Source: Eutreptiella sp. 'Long Island Sound 2002'
Taxonomy: Eukaryota > Protista > Euglenida
DNA length: 64,000 bases
Direction: 5' to 3'
Assembly (NCBI GenBank): GCA_964036045.1
Contig: OZ038378.1
Span: 193,254,001-193,318,000 of the forward strand
Shown here: one piece after another, positions 22,645-29,769 of the stretch
How positions within the stretch are numbered: the first letter of the stretch is position 1
How the letters are laid out: each line of letters starts with the position of its first letter
Made by a program: the position numbers and the translations under genes
Notes under the pieces: generated by a model
Told to the model about the DNA's origin: nothing
Databases searched by the model: none
Seen by the model: only the letters and a program-made list of their open reading frames with translations

Positions 22645-24293
22645 AATGTTGAATGTTCCATGCTGAATGTTGCCATTGGCAGCTCCATGAGTACCCAACA
22701 GGATGCTGCCCTGAATGCTGCCCTCCTACGCGTGTGGCCTGATGTTCTGCGGGAGAGCCATACTGCCTTCCTCGCCATCTGCCGCCGCACAATACAAGAT
22801 CGCGTTCTTCATCCATTCATCCTGCAGCACCCAAATCAGGGACAAAGACAGATAAATTCACATTCAATGGTAGTCCCACGTAGCAGCAAGAAAGAAAGCA
22901 AATCGCAGAAGTTCACTGATAGTAACCATTCCCGTTTAACCACCCATGGAAATCTGCACCATCACTCATTGCACCATATTTCTTCTCGTCCTACCAAGCT
23001 TCAAACAACAGCCATGGGACACCATCCACCCATGAATACGTTTCACTGGCAGAGGCAGGGGCAGGGGCAGGCGTTGGGCCCGAGGCAGGCTCCTCTTCAG
23101 GGTTCAGAAGGTCAGGGCTCTGGAAGGAACGGGTAGGATCCTGACTCCTTCCCGCTGCCATTGCACTTTGCAAAACACATCGTCACCTTAACCTGGAAGC
23201 AATGAAGACCGTGGTGGCAGGTGCGGTTGTTGCTACTTGCAGTCAAGCAAACCCAACCCTTTGTGGCCAGAGGCTTTGACAGTCGGAGGCTTGCACAGGA
23301 TGTGCTCTCTTTGTGATCTTCGATGGATGTTTGCCCCGTGTGCAAGCGGAAAAACTGTTGCATACATTTGTGGTCGGCACAAGGTTTAGGGGGGGAGTAT
23401 CAGACACACTGCATGCACGGTGCGTGCGCAGTGCGTCTTCTGGGGTTGTTTCGTAGACCGTTTCAGCCAAGGAAGAGTTTACTGTGTCCAGCCGGGAGCC
23501 AAACGTTCACGATATGCATGTGCACCTCAGTTTTCGCTTGTGCGATGTCCTTTGCAATGTTCCCTGTTTGCAGGCGTGTTTATTGCAGAATTCTGTCCCT
23601 TTGTCTCCATAGAGCAATCTCTCTCTCATGGCATTTCTCAGGAGTGGTACCCAACCCTCCCCCCTGCAATGCTGGGCTTCCCCCCGGAAAAAAAAACCCT
23701 CGAATTATTCCTCCCCTGGTAGACCATTTCAGAGAGAAGTTGTTCAAATACCTGACGCGGTGCGCGCGCGGTTCGCAAACTCCCCCAGAGTGTGTGTCAA
23801 TTTAAATACACATGCCTCAATGGCAATCATGTGCTCTATGTGGTTCCTACCGAGCTTGCACGCTTCAACAATGGAATGTATGTGTGAATAGTGGTGTGCA
23901 CAGTGAACGATGTTGCTCAAATAAGAACGCTCCCCCTTCCCAATATTGCCTCTTTGTGTCTACAAAAGACAGAACCCCACTTGCAGCTGCTGATCATCGC
24001 GGTTTACAAATCTCGATCCTCTTGCATGTCACCACCCACGCTGCTGCATAGCGCCACAAGTGGTGGGTGTTGAGCACCCTCAATAGTCCAGGCTCACATT
24101 TTGAAAAGACACCGCATTTTCTTTTGACCCATTTTGGACCCATTTTTGGGCCCAGAGGTGATGACTGTATCAATGTGCATGGAGGATGGACATTAATAAA
24201 TGAACAGGGGGGTGTTAGAAAAATTTTGCTCCCAGAAAAAATCCCCCCCCCAGGGGTTGCTTGCGAAAAAATCTGGAGGCAAAGCTCGGGAAG

Positions 24294-26842
24294 AGCCACT
24301 TCTGATTTCGTTTCCCTTTGTTGGGGACCACTCCTAATTCCGCTCTCTGCGCTTGGCGTTGGGGATCCCCGAGAATGCAGGAGTGACGTAGCATTTTCGC
24401 CCTCTTTTGGCCCCCCCAAAAGGCAAGGGTGAAGCAGCCACTTCTGATTTCATTCCGCTTTGTTGGGGACCACTTGTGATTTTGCTCTCCGCGCTTGGCG
24501 TTGGGGATCCCGGAAAAGGCAGGGGTGGCGTAACATTTCCGCCCTCCTTTGGGCCCCCGAGAGGCAGGGTTGAGGCAGCCACTTTTGATTTTGTTCCTCT
24601 TTGTTGGTGATCCCCAAGAATGCCGGGGTGCCATAGCATTTCCGCCCTCTTTTGAGCCCCCCAAAAGGCAACGGTGAGGCAGCCACTTCTGATTTCGTTC
24701 CCCTTCTTCGGGAACCACTTGTGATTTTGCTCTCCGTGCTTGGCGTTGGGGATCCCCGAGAATGCAGGGGTGACATACCATTTCCGCCCTCTTTTGGCCC
24801 CCCCAAAAGGCAAGGGTGAGGGAGCCACTTCTTATTTCGTTCCCCCTTTTTAGGGACCATTTGTGATTTTGCTCTCCGCGCTTGGCGTTGGGGATCCCTG
24901 AGAATGCAGGGGTGACGTAACATTTCCGCCCTCTTTTGGGCCCCCGAGAAGGCACGGGTGAGGCAGCCACTTCTCATATTGTTCCTGTTTATTGGGGATC
25001 TCCGAGAATGCAGGGGTGGCGTAGCATTTCCGCCCTCTTTTGGGCCCCCCAAAAGGCAAGGGTGAGGGGGCCCTTTCTTATTTCGTTCCCCTTTGTCGGG
25101 GACCATTTGAGGTTTGCTCTCCGCGCTTGGACTTGGGGATCCTTGAGAATGCAGGGGTGACGCAACGTTTCCGCCCTATTTTGCGCCCCCCAGAGGGAAG
25201 GGGTGAAGCAGCCACTTCTGATTTTGTTCCTGTTTGCTGGGGATCTCTGAGAATGCAGGGGTATTGTAGCATTTCCGCCCTCTTTTGGGCCCCCCAAAAG
25301 GCAGGGGTGAGGCAGCCACTTGTGATTTTGTTCCTCTTTGTTGGGAACCACTAGTGATTTTGCTCTCCGCGGTTGGCGTTGGGGACCCCCAAGAATGCAA
25401 GGGTGACATTGCATTTTCGCCCTCTTTTGGGCCCCCGAGAAGGCAAGGGTGAGGTAGCCACTTCTGATTTTGTTCCTCTTTGTTGGGGATACCCGAGAAT
25501 GCAAGGGTAACGTAGCATTTCCGCCCTCTTTTAGGCCCCCCAAAAGGCAGGGGTGAGGCAGCCACTTCTTATTTCATTCCCCTTTGTTGGGGACCACTTG
25601 TGATTTTGCTCTCCGCGGTTGGCGTTGGGGACACCCAAGAATGCAAGGGTGACATAGCATTTCCGCCCTCCTTTGGGCCCCCGAGAAGGCAAGGGTGAGG
25701 TAGCCACTTCTGATTTTGTTCCTCTTTGTTGGGGATACCCGAGAATGCAAGGGTAACGTAGCATTTCCGCCCTCTTTTAGGCCCCCCAAAAGGCAGGGGT
25801 GAGGCAGCCACTTCTTATTTCATTCCCCTTTGCTGGGGACCACTAGTGATTTTGCTCTCTGCGCTTGGCGTTGGGGACACCCAAGAATGCAAGGGTGACA
25901 TAGCATTTCCGCCCTCCTTTGGGCCCCCGAGAAGGCAAGGGTGAGGTAGCCACTTCTGATTTTGTTCCTCTTTGTTGGGGATACCCGAGAATGCAAGGGT
26001 AATGTCGCATTTCCGCCCTCTTTTAGGCCCCCCAAAAGGTAGGGGTGAGGCAGCCACTTCTTATTTCATTCCCCTTTGCTGGGGACCACTAGTGATTTTG
26101 CTCTCCGCGCTTGGCGTTGGGGATCCCCGAGATTGTAGGGGTATTGTAGCATTTCCGTGGTCTTTTGGGCCCCAAAAGGCAGGGGTGAGGCAACCACATC
26201 TGATCTTGGTCCCCTTTGTTGGGGATCCCTGAGAATGCAGGGGTGACATAGCATTTGCGCCCTCTTTTTGGCCCCCGACAAGGGAGGGGTGAGGCAACCA
26301 CTTGTGATTTCATTCCCCTTTGTTGGGGACGCCCGAGAATGCGGGGGTGACGTAGCATTTCCGCCCTCTTTTGGGCCCCCGAGAAGAAAGGGGTGAGGGA
26401 GCCACTTCTAAGTTCAGTCCCCTTTGTTGGGCATCCTCGAGAATGCAGCGGTGACATAGCATTTCCGCCCTCTATTGGGTCCTCGAGAAGGTAGGGGTGA
26501 GGTAGCCACTTCTGATTTATTTCCCCTTTGTCGGGGATGGCCAACAACGCAGGGGTAACGTGGCATTTCCGCCCTCTGTTGGACCCCCGAAAAGGCAGGG
26601 GTGAGGCAGCCACTTCTGATTTCGTTCCCCTTTGTTGAAGACTAGTTCTGATTTTGCTCCCCGCGCTTGGCGTTAGGGATCCCTGACAATGCACGGCTGA
26701 CGTAGCATTTCTGCCCTCTTTTGGGCCCCCAAGAAGGCACGGGTGCGGCGGCCACTTGTGATTTAGTTTCCCTTTATTGGGCCTCCCCGAGAATGCAGGG
26801 GTGACATAGCGTTTCCACCCTCTTTTGGGCCCCTGAGAAGGC
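24294..26842. repeat. Complex tandem satellite of 104-bp and 142-bp monomers with a local 246-bp higher-order repeat
   Basis: Anchor AGCCACTTCT at 25456, 25560, 25702, 25806, 25948 and 26052 (spacings 104/142/104/142/104). The long monomer carries an extra ~38-bp module (ACCACTTGTGATTTTGCTCTCCGCGCTTGGCGTTGGGG). Confidence 0.95.
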
Positions 26843-27841
26843 CAGTATGAAGAACGGGTGGCAAAGGTGTGGAGACCAGATTTTAGGTTTGCCAACGCAG
26901 CCAACGCAGATGACTTCACACTAGAGCCCGGTGATTGTTACCCGGATTTTGACCGCTGCCTGATGGTTGGCATCTGGTTCTTTGATGGCGAAATCAGAAA
27001 CGAGATGGATCTACGCAGCTACCCATTTGACATTGATGATATCGACATCCGGATCAATTCCATGCACCTTGAGAGGTACGGCTACGTGGGTTCCGACCTT
27101 GTACTGGCGTACGAGGACTACGGTGACAACACGATCTTGTTCATGCCTGGCTTTTCACCAAACAATGGCGGGTTACTGGAATGGAAAATTCTTGAATTGC
27201 GGACAGAACGCGAGCAATTTGGCAAACAAGCCGGCTGGTCTGAGTACTACGAAGTAAATTTTAAGCTTCGCATCCAGCGCAGGCCTGAGGCAGTCATTGT
27301 TAAAATTGTCCTTCCACTGCTCTTGGCCTCAGTCATGACGTTTGCCTGTTTTCAATGGGATTTCTCTGAGAATCTTATCGACAGAACAAATTTTGTGGCA
27401 ACCATGTTCCTGGCAATATCTGCATTTTTGTGGGTCATTGACGCAGAGACCCCTCGCACGCCCTATTTGAAAAGCCTAGATAAGGTCACTGTGATCGCGA
27501 TCGCTGCAACGGTCCTCATTGCCATTGAGACCATTGCAATCAAGCAGCTTACTCTATGGGGCCTGGCAGAAACTGTTGCTGAGCCTTTAGACGCGGGCCT
27601 GGGTGTCATCATGTGTTGTATCATGAATTGGAGATTCTGCCAGATTCTGTGGAACGACTCTGCGGAGTGGAGGAAGCTGCGCGGGAAAGCTCCAGCAACT
27701 GACCAATCGGGCGAGGAAGCATTAAAGAAATTGGTCCAATCTCAACAGAGGTACTCAAAAGTCGGCGCCTCAGTGGAGGACTACGTGGAGGACCCAGTGG
27801 AGGACCACGTGGAGGACCTCGCGGAGAAGAAGAAGCAATAG
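26843..27841 (+). CDS. Cys-less (Pro-loop) pentameric ligand-gated ion channel subunit, ELIC/GLIC-like; N-terminus missing
   Basis: Uninterrupted frame from the satellite edge to TAG at 27839-27841. Loop A WRPDFRFAN; loop 7 MDLRSYPFD without flanking cysteines; pre-M1 IQRRP; M1 VIVKIVLPLLLASVMTFACF; M2 DRTNFVATMFLAISAF; M2-M3 TPRTPYLKSLD; M3 and a short M4. Confidence 0.85.
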   Translation, partial: QYEERVAKVWRPDFRFANAANADDFTLEPGDCYPDFDRCLMVGIWFFDGEIRNEMDLRSYPFDIDDIDIRINSMHLERYGYVGSDLVLAYEDYGDNTILFMPGFSPNNGGLLEWKILELRTEREQFGKQAGWSEYYEVNFKLRIQRRPEAVIVKIVLPLLLASVMTFACFQWDFSENLIDRTNFVATMFLAISAFLWVIDAETPRTPYLKSLDKVTVIAIAATVLIAIETIAIKQLTLWGLAETVAEPLDAGLGVIMCCIMNWRFCQILWNDSAEWRKLRGKAPATDQSGEEALKKLVQSQQRYSKVGASVEDYVEDPVEDHVEDLAEKKKQ

Positions 27842-29769
27842 GATGCAGGCTGCAGCTTTGACCCATGTACAAGAGATTTGCGGGGGGACTGGTGGAGAAG
27901 TGCGGGCTTGAGTTAAAGCCACTACCCTGTACCATGGAGCGTTGTCCCAACGCTTCGCTCCAGTGAACAGGCTGGCTGTCACTCCAGTGAACAGGCCAGT
28001 TGTAGGGCTTTGAACTCAGTCCCAAATACAGCTCTGCTTAAGTGTGCCTGGGCTCCCTGACTGATGTGTTGACCACCTGCATTTTCCAGCACCAAGATGT
28101 GTTTGAGTTCGGGTTGGTTTGAGCATGGTACCAATGGTACCAATTGCCTGCTTTCCCAAACAGCAGAAACTGCATCTCTGGATCCATAGGTTCAGAACTG
28201 TTTATACCCATATATTGTCACGAGCAGCCTTTGCTTTTCCGATACGATGTGTACATAACTCAGTCATCTACTGTACATAGTTGGATGCACTAGTGTGAAC
28301 ACAACATATTGGACTAACGGCTGGAAGTGCCTATGGTGGGGGCATCCAGTCAATGAGAACCGACCATTGCTCTCTCTGTTGTCCCCCTCAGCCCTGAGAG
28401 CCTGGAAGTGACCCTGTTGTACATACATAGCTTACCCGGAGCTGTGGGTGTGGAGTTTAGTGTTCGGGCGAACCACAGTCTGTGTGAGATAGATGATACG
28501 ATTCGATGATAAGCCCCCCTCGATGATAGGGCTCGATGATAGGGAGGCAATGTTATAAAATAAGATAAGTTGAGATAGATAGAACAAGTTAAAGATAAAT
28601 GTTCGCTTGACACTCCTTTGGTCTTAGAGAAGAAAAGTCGAGTTTTCAGGCATGCGTAGCTCCAGTGTGAAAAGGAAAAATGATTGATGATGACGGCCGG
28701 TGCGGTGTTAAAACAAGGACTGCGTACTCCTGACCCCCGTGAAAAGCAACAACCGTGCACCTGAATGTAGAGGATGGGGGGGGGGGGGGGGGGCTGGGCT
28801 TAAATGCTGCTCAAACTGCGAACGGAGGTGATCACCCGCGTGTGGCCTCAGGCCATCGTTTGCCCTTTGCTGCAGACCCGGCGACAACCTGCCCTTGCCA
28901 GGGAATGAGGCAGCCGATGAGCAGGCGGAACCGGGCAGGGACCTGCACCCGAGCAATCTGCTGCCCTTGTCGCAGCGACACCGAGTCATGGAGTGGGATG
29001 CCTGCGGACTTGAGCCCATGCATGAATCCGGGGATCAGCGAGATACGTCTGATGTGGACTCAGGGGGTGGGGACTCGAGCGACCCCAGTGATGCCTTGTC
29101 AGCAGATAGTGGGGATTGCAGTTCGGACGGCTGCAGCTCCGACAGCAGGGTACAGATATTAGTGAAACCCGGCTAAGGGGGTTGTTGGGGGACAGTGACA
29201 GTGGCAGCTTCAGCGGCGGCCCAGGGTGGTGAGGGTAGGGTGGATTGAGGCCTGAATGTGACCCAGTACCCGGCACAATATGGACAACTGGTGTGGTGCC
29301 TGCTGGTGCCATGCTGGACAATGCGAACAATGTGTGTTGCGGCTCCGCTGTGTGATACTTGTGCTGTTGGAATGCAAGAGTGATTCTGGAGGATGACCAC
29401 TATTGTCGATTTACAGCCAAGATATGGCACTTGATAGTGCCTTGTGTGCACTGTGTGTTGCGCCTTGAAGTGAGATGGATGCCAGAGTGGCCCTGGAGGT
29501 TTGCAACCATCATTGTTTTGTGGCCAACCTACAGCTCGTCCAAGATATAAGGGGGCAAATGTACTGTAGTAATTTAGGACCAAATTGAATTAGGCCAGGT
29601 CCCAATTTCCAAATGTGAGGATACGTGCTCTGTTTGCCCGAATTCTAGTGGTATGTGTGGGTACGTAAAAGATTCATATGGAGGGGGGGGTTCCTGCACC
29701 AGTAAAAAATGGGGGGTTGGGGTTGGAAAAGGCGTGCCTTGACCAAGAAAGCCTGCTTGAAACCGCAGC

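Follow-up and report, generated by a model that had tools for sequence, protein, structure and literature searches.

Ligand-gated ion channels of the pentameric kind (pLGICs) canonically carry a signal peptide and hold both their ligand-binding domain (LBD) and their C-terminus on the extracytoplasmic side. In the metazoan Cys-loop receptors (nAChR, 5-HT3, GABA-A and GlyR), two cysteines 13 residues apart flank a loop; GLIC (Gloeobacter violaceus, PDB 3EAM), ELIC (the amine-gated channel of Dickeya/Erwinia, PDB 2VL0) and a set of protist homologues are Cys-less. To our knowledge none of the protist Cys-less pLGICs has been characterised or assigned a ligand, a location or a role. They have been inventoried in stramenopiles, chlorophytes, opisthokonts, alveolates and haptophytes (PMC4795631); this 2016 survey by Jaiteh, Taly and Henin lists no euglenozoan, and its text contains none of 'euglen', 'excavat' and 'signal peptide'. 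Here we describe such a gene from a euglenid, located on a stretch of 64,000 nucleotides of the Eutreptiella sp. 'Long Island Sound 2002' assembly GCA_964036045.1 (contig OZ038378.1, positions 193,254,001 to 193,318,000 of the forward strand; hereafter the window, within which positions are numbered). At the window locus lies a true Cys-less homologue of the pLGICs whose pore is of the cation type; it is not a complete receptor. It is probably a gene relic, with a longer paralogue on C13 as the candidate working channel.

The + strand of the window holds an open frame at 26837–27841, with its stop at 27839–27841 and the preceding stop, TGA, at 26834–26836. The frame runs from loop A to the fourth transmembrane helix, M4, and then into a 62-residue C-tail ending in KKKQ:

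26837–27841, + strand: 5'-truncated pLGIC coding sequence, 334 codons plus stop (332 codons counted from 26843)
26870–26881, + strand: WRPD motif, in the loop A region of the frame
26999–27043, + strand: Pro-loop (equivalent of the Cys-loop), NEMDLRSYPFDIDDI, with YPFD and without cysteines
27290–27358, + strand: M1 helix
27383–27439, + strand: M2 pore helix, directly after D(-1') at 27380–27382
27440–27484, + strand: M2–M3 loop with PRTPY
27485–27541, + strand: M3 helix
27593–27652, + strand: M4 helix
27653–27838, + strand: hydrophilic tail after M4, rich in lysine and arginine (K/R) beside the membrane, with a KKXX-type end

The motifs from which a preliminary description of this DNA had argued for an ion channel (WRPD, a Cys-less YPFD loop, four transmembrane segments, PRTPY, and D, R and L in M2) are all present at 26843–27841 on the + strand. 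Asparagine and isoleucine occupy the two positions at which metazoan receptors have the Cys-loop cysteines. Numbered backwards from the proline of PRTPY, set as 23' after GLIC, M2 has D at -1', R at 0', N at 2', T at 6', L at 9', A at 13' and W at 16'. An acidic residue at -1' without Pro-Ala at -2'/-1' is the established rule for cation selectivity, and the window M2 (acidic -1', R 0', L 9', no Pro-Ala at -2'/-1') is predicted to line a cation-selective pore. A 12-nt tandem repeat lies inside the C-tail at 27773–27826.

Membership of the pLGIC superfamily is secure. Searched alone with phmmer, the window frame matches GLIC chains at E 2.6e-7 to 1e-5 (frame residues 8–216 against GLIC 70–259), and hidden Markov model (HMM) alignments to GLIC and GABA rho1 extend through M3. 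A family profile, built from the C13 paralogue (P0001), the window frame, P0003 and pieces of a Tara Oceans transcript, matches over 300 solved pLGIC chains (E 2e-13 to 1e-10), in alignments extending from the LBD to M3. On the Pfam model Neur_chan_LBD the frame alone reaches 18.6 bits, below the cut-off of 26 and over profile positions 127–216 of 216 only, because it begins in the middle of the LBD; P0001 reaches 43.6 bits against the same cut-off, over positions 10–216. We did not count the sub-threshold Pfam score as a refutation of pLGIC identity, since P0001, the family profile and the matches in the PDB are decisive. An AlphaFold model of P0001 (97-sequence alignment; predicted local distance difference test (pLDDT) 87, predicted template modelling score (pTM) 0.83) has GLIC as its top Foldseek match (E 4e-21, template modelling (TM) score 0.85–0.87, root mean square deviation ~3 Å), with GABA-A receptors next. 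A full N-terminal LBD β-sandwich is found in the paralogue and not in the window frame. The frame does possess the Pro-loop proline in its [FY]PFD setting (P and D invariant, F nearly so, in 94–97 aligned relatives), four transmembrane helices (modelled at pLDDT >93), R/K at 0' and L at 9' of M2, and a proline-containing M2–M3 loop. The earlier claim that a euglenid genome holds a Cys-less homologue of the pLGICs is thus borne out, by the GLIC and profile matches and by the spliced-leader count given below; the HMM search proposed with it gives a significant Neur_chan_LBD match for the paralogue, and the frame alone stays sub-threshold in Pfam.

Among described channels GLIC is the best match, by sequence to the window frame and by structure to the paralogue model. 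GLIC and the window family have in common the lack of cysteines, a short M3–M4 loop, a PxTPY M2–M3 loop, A at 13' and an acidic cytoplasmic pore mouth, at an identity of just 17–20%. They differ in that GLIC has a signal peptide and almost nothing after M4, whereas the window family has no detectable signal peptide, a 43–62-residue tail and the opposite K/R bias; the window copy moreover has no equivalent of GLIC residues 1 to ~65. ELIC is likewise Cys-less with an acidic -1', R 0' and L 9' (profile E 3e-12), but by profile it stands no nearer to the window family than do GABA-A rho1, GlyR or nAChR delta. The label 'ELIC-type', which had been drawn from M2, does not survive this comparison: ELIC scores 49.5 bits against 53.2 for GABA rho1 and 50.2 for nAChR delta, and ~120 relatives share D(-1')/R(0')/T(6')/L(9')/A(13') as their consensus. 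We rejected an ELIC-specific kinship on the strength of the top single-sequence and fold matches (both GLIC), the tree placement and the shared M2 consensus. With metazoan Cys-loop receptors the family shares the fold, the FPFD Pro-loop, the pre-M1 Arg and M2 positions 0' and 9'; the disulfide pair, the long M3–M4 intracellular domain and the signal peptide are lacking. The protist Cys-less pLGICs (PMC4795631) are of the same kind as the window gene, being eukaryotic and Cys-less with a short M3–M4 loop. The window gene nests within their clade, and its euglenozoan host differs from the inventoried groups. The 'Cys' columns of the relatives hold mostly N and I/L/V.

An exhaustive profile search returned 3,905 proteins at E <=1e-3, 11 of them at E <=1e-30, and relationships were judged on a 95-row tree (IQ-TREE quick search, with support from the SH-like approximate likelihood ratio test, SH-aLRT). 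The window frame and P0001 group with the Tara transcript protein (support 99); the next to join them is a group from metagenomes, P0003 among it (support 99), and all of these nest in a 58-row clade without signal peptides (support 97). Rows with a bacteria-type signal peptide lie on the other side of the tree in 15 of 16 cases. The sole named clade member checked is a relative at E 1.6e-33 that shares its cluster with a transcript from the diatom Corethron pennatum (MMETSP). 'Prokaryote-type', a second label of the preliminary description, is unspecific for a gene of the signal-peptide-less clade, apart from most bacteria-type signal-peptide rows. In no specific sense, then, is the locus ELIC-like or derived from prokaryotes. 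Outside Euglena the nearest homologue is L007, a contig of 1759 nt from a marine transcript (Tara Oceans run ERR1711871), which has no Euglena spliced leader at its 5' end. Its open reading frames (ORFs) for the N-terminal half of the LBD (84–455) and for the remainder (457–1392) are in different frames, by contig error or real frameshift; the two pieces, separated by a frameshift or stop around 405–456, were used separately and unjoined. Two to four prolines stand directly before strand β1 in signal-peptide-less and bacteria-like relatives alike (P0008–P0153).

The window copy parts from its intact kin at its 5' end. P0001 (394 aa) is found at 100% identity at C13:23920851–23922032 (also L002 1501–2685 and L001 10001–11185), within a 400-codon open frame that holds the whole LBD and transmembrane domain. 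The window copy aligns solely to P0001 residues 85–394 (73–78% amino-acid and 83.7% nucleotide identity), and a satellite array ~2.5 kb long lies directly upstream of the frame:

24290–26845, no strand: satellite array abutting the 5' end of the gene fragment, 104-bp unit with a 246-bp higher-order period (Tandem Repeats Finder)
26843–26849, + strand: breakpoint, with satellite match upstream and paralogue match from codon 85 downstream (three-way alignment)

Homology to the paralogue starts at 26849 by blastn, a position that tblastn equates with paralogue residue 85. The junction is bridged without differences by a DNA contig of run X10 (26813–28311), a run possibly from the assembled sample. 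The satellite is very high-copy in X10 DNA contigs (summed word depth ~2x10^5), occurs also in metatranscriptome run X2, and is present as single units downstream of the C13 paralogue. On the minus strand of the satellite there are long ORFs that are spurious; bacterial terminators called by a promoter/terminator scan, a scan irrelevant for a euglenid, proved to be satellite units and were discarded.

Residues 1–84 of P0001, missing from the window copy, hold β1 (32–47) and β2 (52–64) in the model. In pLGICs these strands carry the β1–β2 coupling loop and the complementary-face binding loops. This N-terminal part is conserved as well as the rest of the protein. Its equivalent was found neither in the 64-kb window (tblastn with P0001–P0003) nor, beyond C13, in the 2.28-Gb genome (six-frame search with P0001), and across the whole genome a profile of the N-terminal 100 residues detects the C13 locus only (E 3e-50; next match E 0.9). 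The two halves are contiguous in both the C13 paralogue and L007, so that no intron is expected at the breakpoint. With residues 1–84 absent, the copy has lost an essential part relative to intact kin, as pseudogenes do. Beyond the window stop, alignment to the 3' flank of the paralogue persists for ~130 nt at roughly neutral divergence; the 3' untranslated region (UTR) therefore belonged to the duplicated unit.

The truncated copy is transcribed. Part of 26849–28300 is contained in 12 runs from six studies, with 3 of the 12 recorded as RNA; for four runs, contigs (not reads) were mapped to 26700–29700 (3,001 letters). The spliced leader (SL) of Euglena gracilis was taken as the SL primer in PMC5654406. 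Its 24 nt occur 5,458 times in the genome at <=1 mismatch, whereas the reversed control gives 0 matches; by this sign the genome would be that of E. gracilis or of a very close relation. The SL copies are scattered along the chromosomes, in numbers well beyond what one would expect of an SL-RNA gene array alone. At the window locus, a run X4 contig covering 26924–27314 with 0 differences is preceded by 23 loose letters, TTTCTGAGTGTCTATTTCTTTTC, matching the E. gracilis SL primer at 22 of 23 positions. A contig of metatranscriptome run X2, identical to the locus over 27384–28058, opens at 27384 behind the loose letters ATTTTTTTTC, the SL's 3' end. The G of each AG fits SL and genome alike, and the exons therefore start at 26925 and 27385. 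These junctions are RNA, because no second genomic copy could supply an SL-headed DNA version. Contigs of run X1 tile 27402–28272. The resulting transcript features are:

26923–26924, + strand: AG trans-splice acceptor 1, SL mRNA starting at 26925 (genomic ...actAG/agccc)
26963–27841, + strand: first AUG after the 26925 acceptor, in frame, 292-aa product starting at β6, before the Pro-loop
27383–27384, + strand: AG trans-splice acceptor 2, mRNA starting at 27385 (genomic ...cgacAG/aacaaa)
27404–27841, + strand: first AUG after the 27385 acceptor, in frame, 145-aa product starting at M2 7'
27842–28272, + strand: 3' UTR (X1 contigs reach 28272, X2 contigs 28058)

P0007, called as a gene on another assembly, is identical to the 292-aa product. 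In the AlphaFold model of this product the transmembrane domain has pLDDT 93–98 and the LBD remnant is partly unstructured (pLDDT 58–65 in residues 40–70). The 145-aa product is identical to P0006 (UniRef) and clusters with the 168-aa EukProt entry P0004, which starts at 27335. Silence, as expected of a pseudogene, is thus not what we see, since SL-joined RNA contigs exist. The preliminary description had reserved the verdict of a dead fragment for a locus with neither transcript nor intact paralogue; transcripts and a paralogue with a whole LBD were both found. Its picture of a receptor awaiting a 'full-length cDNA' has to be given up, as the frame lacks paralogue residues 1–84 and the mature mRNAs start inside it. 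For the role in chemosensing or flagellar control that it had floated, the analysis brought up nothing that speaks for or against.

Three side observations concern the transcripts and the DNA beyond the frame. Locus-identical contigs in estuary metatranscriptomes (runs X2, X3 and X5) may come from an E. gracilis-like organism or from RNA carry-over. At 28316–28416 and 29326–29426, in or just past the 3' UTR, DNA-contig depths of ~6,900 and ~1,400 mark dispersed repeats, the former also present in RNA contigs that run on into several different flanks. A run of ~21 G at 28776–28796 seemingly cuts reads and contigs.

In the reading that we regard as probable, the window locus is a 5'-truncated duplicate that was recently disabled and persists as a relic still being transcribed, with the C13 paralogue as candidate for the working channel. 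The copy starts at parent codon 85, fused there to the satellite array, and has lost β1 and β2, hence the β1–β2 loop and the complementary-face loops. Everything from loop A on is retained, including the Pro-loop, all four helices of the pore domain and the C-tail. Trans-splicing at the two AG sites inside the frame leaves mature mRNAs that can encode just 292-aa or 145-aa N-terminally cut proteins, and the copy would be unable to work alone as a ligand-gated receptor. Several observations weigh against such a relic. Compared pairwise with the C13 paralogue, the window copy gives a nonsynonymous to synonymous rate ratio (dN/dS) of 0.34 at dS 0.37 (by region, LBD remnant 0.23, transmembrane domain 0.37, tail 0.46). 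Polarised with P0002 as the outgroup, the window copy has 10 amino-acid changes of its own and the paralogue 13, counts that reject a window branch evolving 3-fold faster (p = 0.0012); in the maximum-likelihood tree the terminal branches of the two measure 0.10 and 0.14, respectively. The 334 codons contain no stop or frameshift at 16% nucleotide divergence, and after ~75 neutral substitutions an open frame would be expected just ~6% of the time. Disabling mutations joined to relaxed selection, the mark of a pseudogene, are not seen in the window copy. By these sequence measures the copy does not resemble an old pseudogene and has been constrained for most of its history, until recently or still. 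The same side of the balance takes the C13 paralogue, for which no in-frame ATG was found before residue 51, and run X4, whose nature as RNA is only a guess.

Given these signs of constraint, the copy was truncated recently, or selection acts on the shortened product itself. Under the latter, which we consider unlikely but a serious rival, the copy is a working gene whose 292-aa product serves as an accessory or dominant-negative subunit with the paralogue, or as a ligand-independent cation leak channel. The dN/dS of 0.34, symmetric branches and intact frame speak for it, together with the in-frame position of the first AUG after each SL site, the retained KKXX end, transcripts in runs from at least 3 studies plus EukProt and UniRef, and a transmembrane domain modelled at pLDDT 93–98. 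However, the better-supported start at 27385 (X1, X2 and the 145-aa UniRef entry) falls in the middle of M2 and cannot yield a pore; the β-sandwich would be without two core strands, with β6 unstructured in the model; and no real kin of the same architecture is shown, since P0009 and P0002 start similarly but P0002 does so via a contig frameshift. Transcription alone is also weak evidence of function. We favour recent loss because the best-supported mRNA starts in mid-M2, because half a β-sandwich is unlikely to fold, and because the family undergoes birth-and-death decay, the context for which is a shattered, partly inverted third fragment on C13.

Where the copy came from is a separate matter, and a 5'-truncated retrocopy (processed pseudogene) of the C13 mRNA inserted into the satellite, an origin that we rate as distinctly unlikely, would be compatible with recent loss, as it concerns origin and not present function. 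Truncation at the 5' end is typical of retroposition, ~130 nt of 3' UTR homology is retained, and thousands of SL copies populate the genome; but neither a poly(A) remnant nor a target-site duplication was seen, the satellite does not resume downstream of the gene copy, and the signs of selection contradict a copy that was dead on arrival. Retroposition and DNA duplication would in any case look alike from a parent intronless in the shared part. It is very improbable that the locus is a complete cation-selective receptor with one or more 5' exons elsewhere, or that the junction was created by misassembly. Introns can occur in euglenid genes, and a satellite could in principle sit in one; the C13 paralogue has a polypyrimidine-AG acceptor (L002:1535–1536, 36 nt into the frame and followed by an out-of-frame ATG), by which the family may make use of an upstream exon. 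Against this, nothing like residues 1–84 occurs in the window or, beyond C13, in the genome; the halves are contiguous without an intron in the paralogue and the Tara transcript; SL addition at 26925 and 27385 sets the mRNA 5' ends downstream of the breakpoint; and the X10 DNA contig argues against misassembly.

Two further pLGIC-like loci were found in the genome:

C13:23781730–23782121: shattered third copy (P0005; L004/L005), ~140 kb from the C13 paralogue
C2266:7916–11464 (L006 649–2865), minus strand: second, distant Cys-less pLGIC-like frame, 738 codons

The shattered copy consists of a 68-residue LBD piece, with 76% identity to the paralogue, beside an inverted 40-residue piece, and its similarity is a mosaic of the window copy and the C13 paralogue. 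In the C2266 frame the Pro-loop reads FPFD and M2 opens with D-R; the protein has ~180 extra residues at its N-terminus and a C-tail of ~200 residues. The frame matches the Pfam model Neur_chan_memb at just E 1e-3 and lies on a small unplaced contig, for which contamination is possible. No neighbouring genes lend context to the window locus, the ORFs on both strands over 18–36 kb being repeat-derived or featureless.

The relatives of the window gene also bear on how these channels sit in the membrane. The closest of them have short hydrophilic N-termini, with β1 within 10–60 residues. A hydropathy heuristic finds no signal-peptide-like segment in P0003, the Tara transcript or ~80 related full-length sequences, and the same heuristic finds classic signal peptides in bacteria-like relatives. 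Gene-model N-termini may be wrong or incomplete (P0001 itself has no in-frame ATG before residue 51); for two relatives the contig has an in-frame stop upstream of the start, and one sequence is of transcriptome origin. We counted lysines and arginines (K+R) on the LBD side (pre-M1 segment, M2–M3 loop and post-M4 segment) and on the opposite side (M1–M2 and M3–M4 loops) in 83 full-length rows without and 15 with a signal peptide. Because the rows are linked by phylogeny, the Mann-Whitney p-values overstate independence:

K+R on the LBD side minus the opposite side, mean: +4.37 without signal peptide, -1.47 with (p 3.6e-7)
Rows with a K+R difference >0: 96% without signal peptide, 20% with
Tail after M4, median: 52 aa without signal peptide, 2 aa with (p 4e-6)

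P0001 has 10 K+R on the LBD side and 2 on the opposite side. All three of the window copy, the paralogue and the Tara homologue end in a C-terminal KKXX (KKKQ, KKYQ and KKEQ, respectively), with tails of different lengths. Positive residues favour the cytosolic side of a membrane (the positive-inside rule), and a C-terminal di-lysine KKXX is a COPI retrieval signal to the endoplasmic reticulum (ER) when cytosolic. The missing signal peptide, the K/R bias, the long tails and KKXX together suggest an LBD and tail that face the cytosol; we count the dispensability of a disulfide in the clade among the features pointing the same way. Tentatively, then, and at somewhat less than even odds in our judgement, the protist clade may be built 'inside-out', as endomembrane cation channels with a cytosolic LBD and a cytosolic ligand; the window copy would then represent a truncated form of them. 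KKXX suggests ER residence in the Euglena/Tara subgroup. An incomplete literature search, which is not proof of novelty, found no published pLGIC with a cytosolic LBD or without a signal peptide.

Cys-less protist pLGICs have been catalogued since 2016, and Euglenozoa are now added to the groups that carry them. In one species there is a full-length-looking gene on C13, a truncated and expressed copy in the window, a shattered fragment and a distant pLGIC on C2266; the window locus should accordingly not be cloned as 'the Euglena receptor'. The missing signal peptide, reversed charge bias and long C-tails shared by the ~80 nearest relatives amount to a testable topology hypothesis. If it is true, a cytosol-facing LBD would be a major exception to the textbook topology of the superfamily, and the protist channels would be intracellular ligand-gated channels, not surface chemoreceptors.

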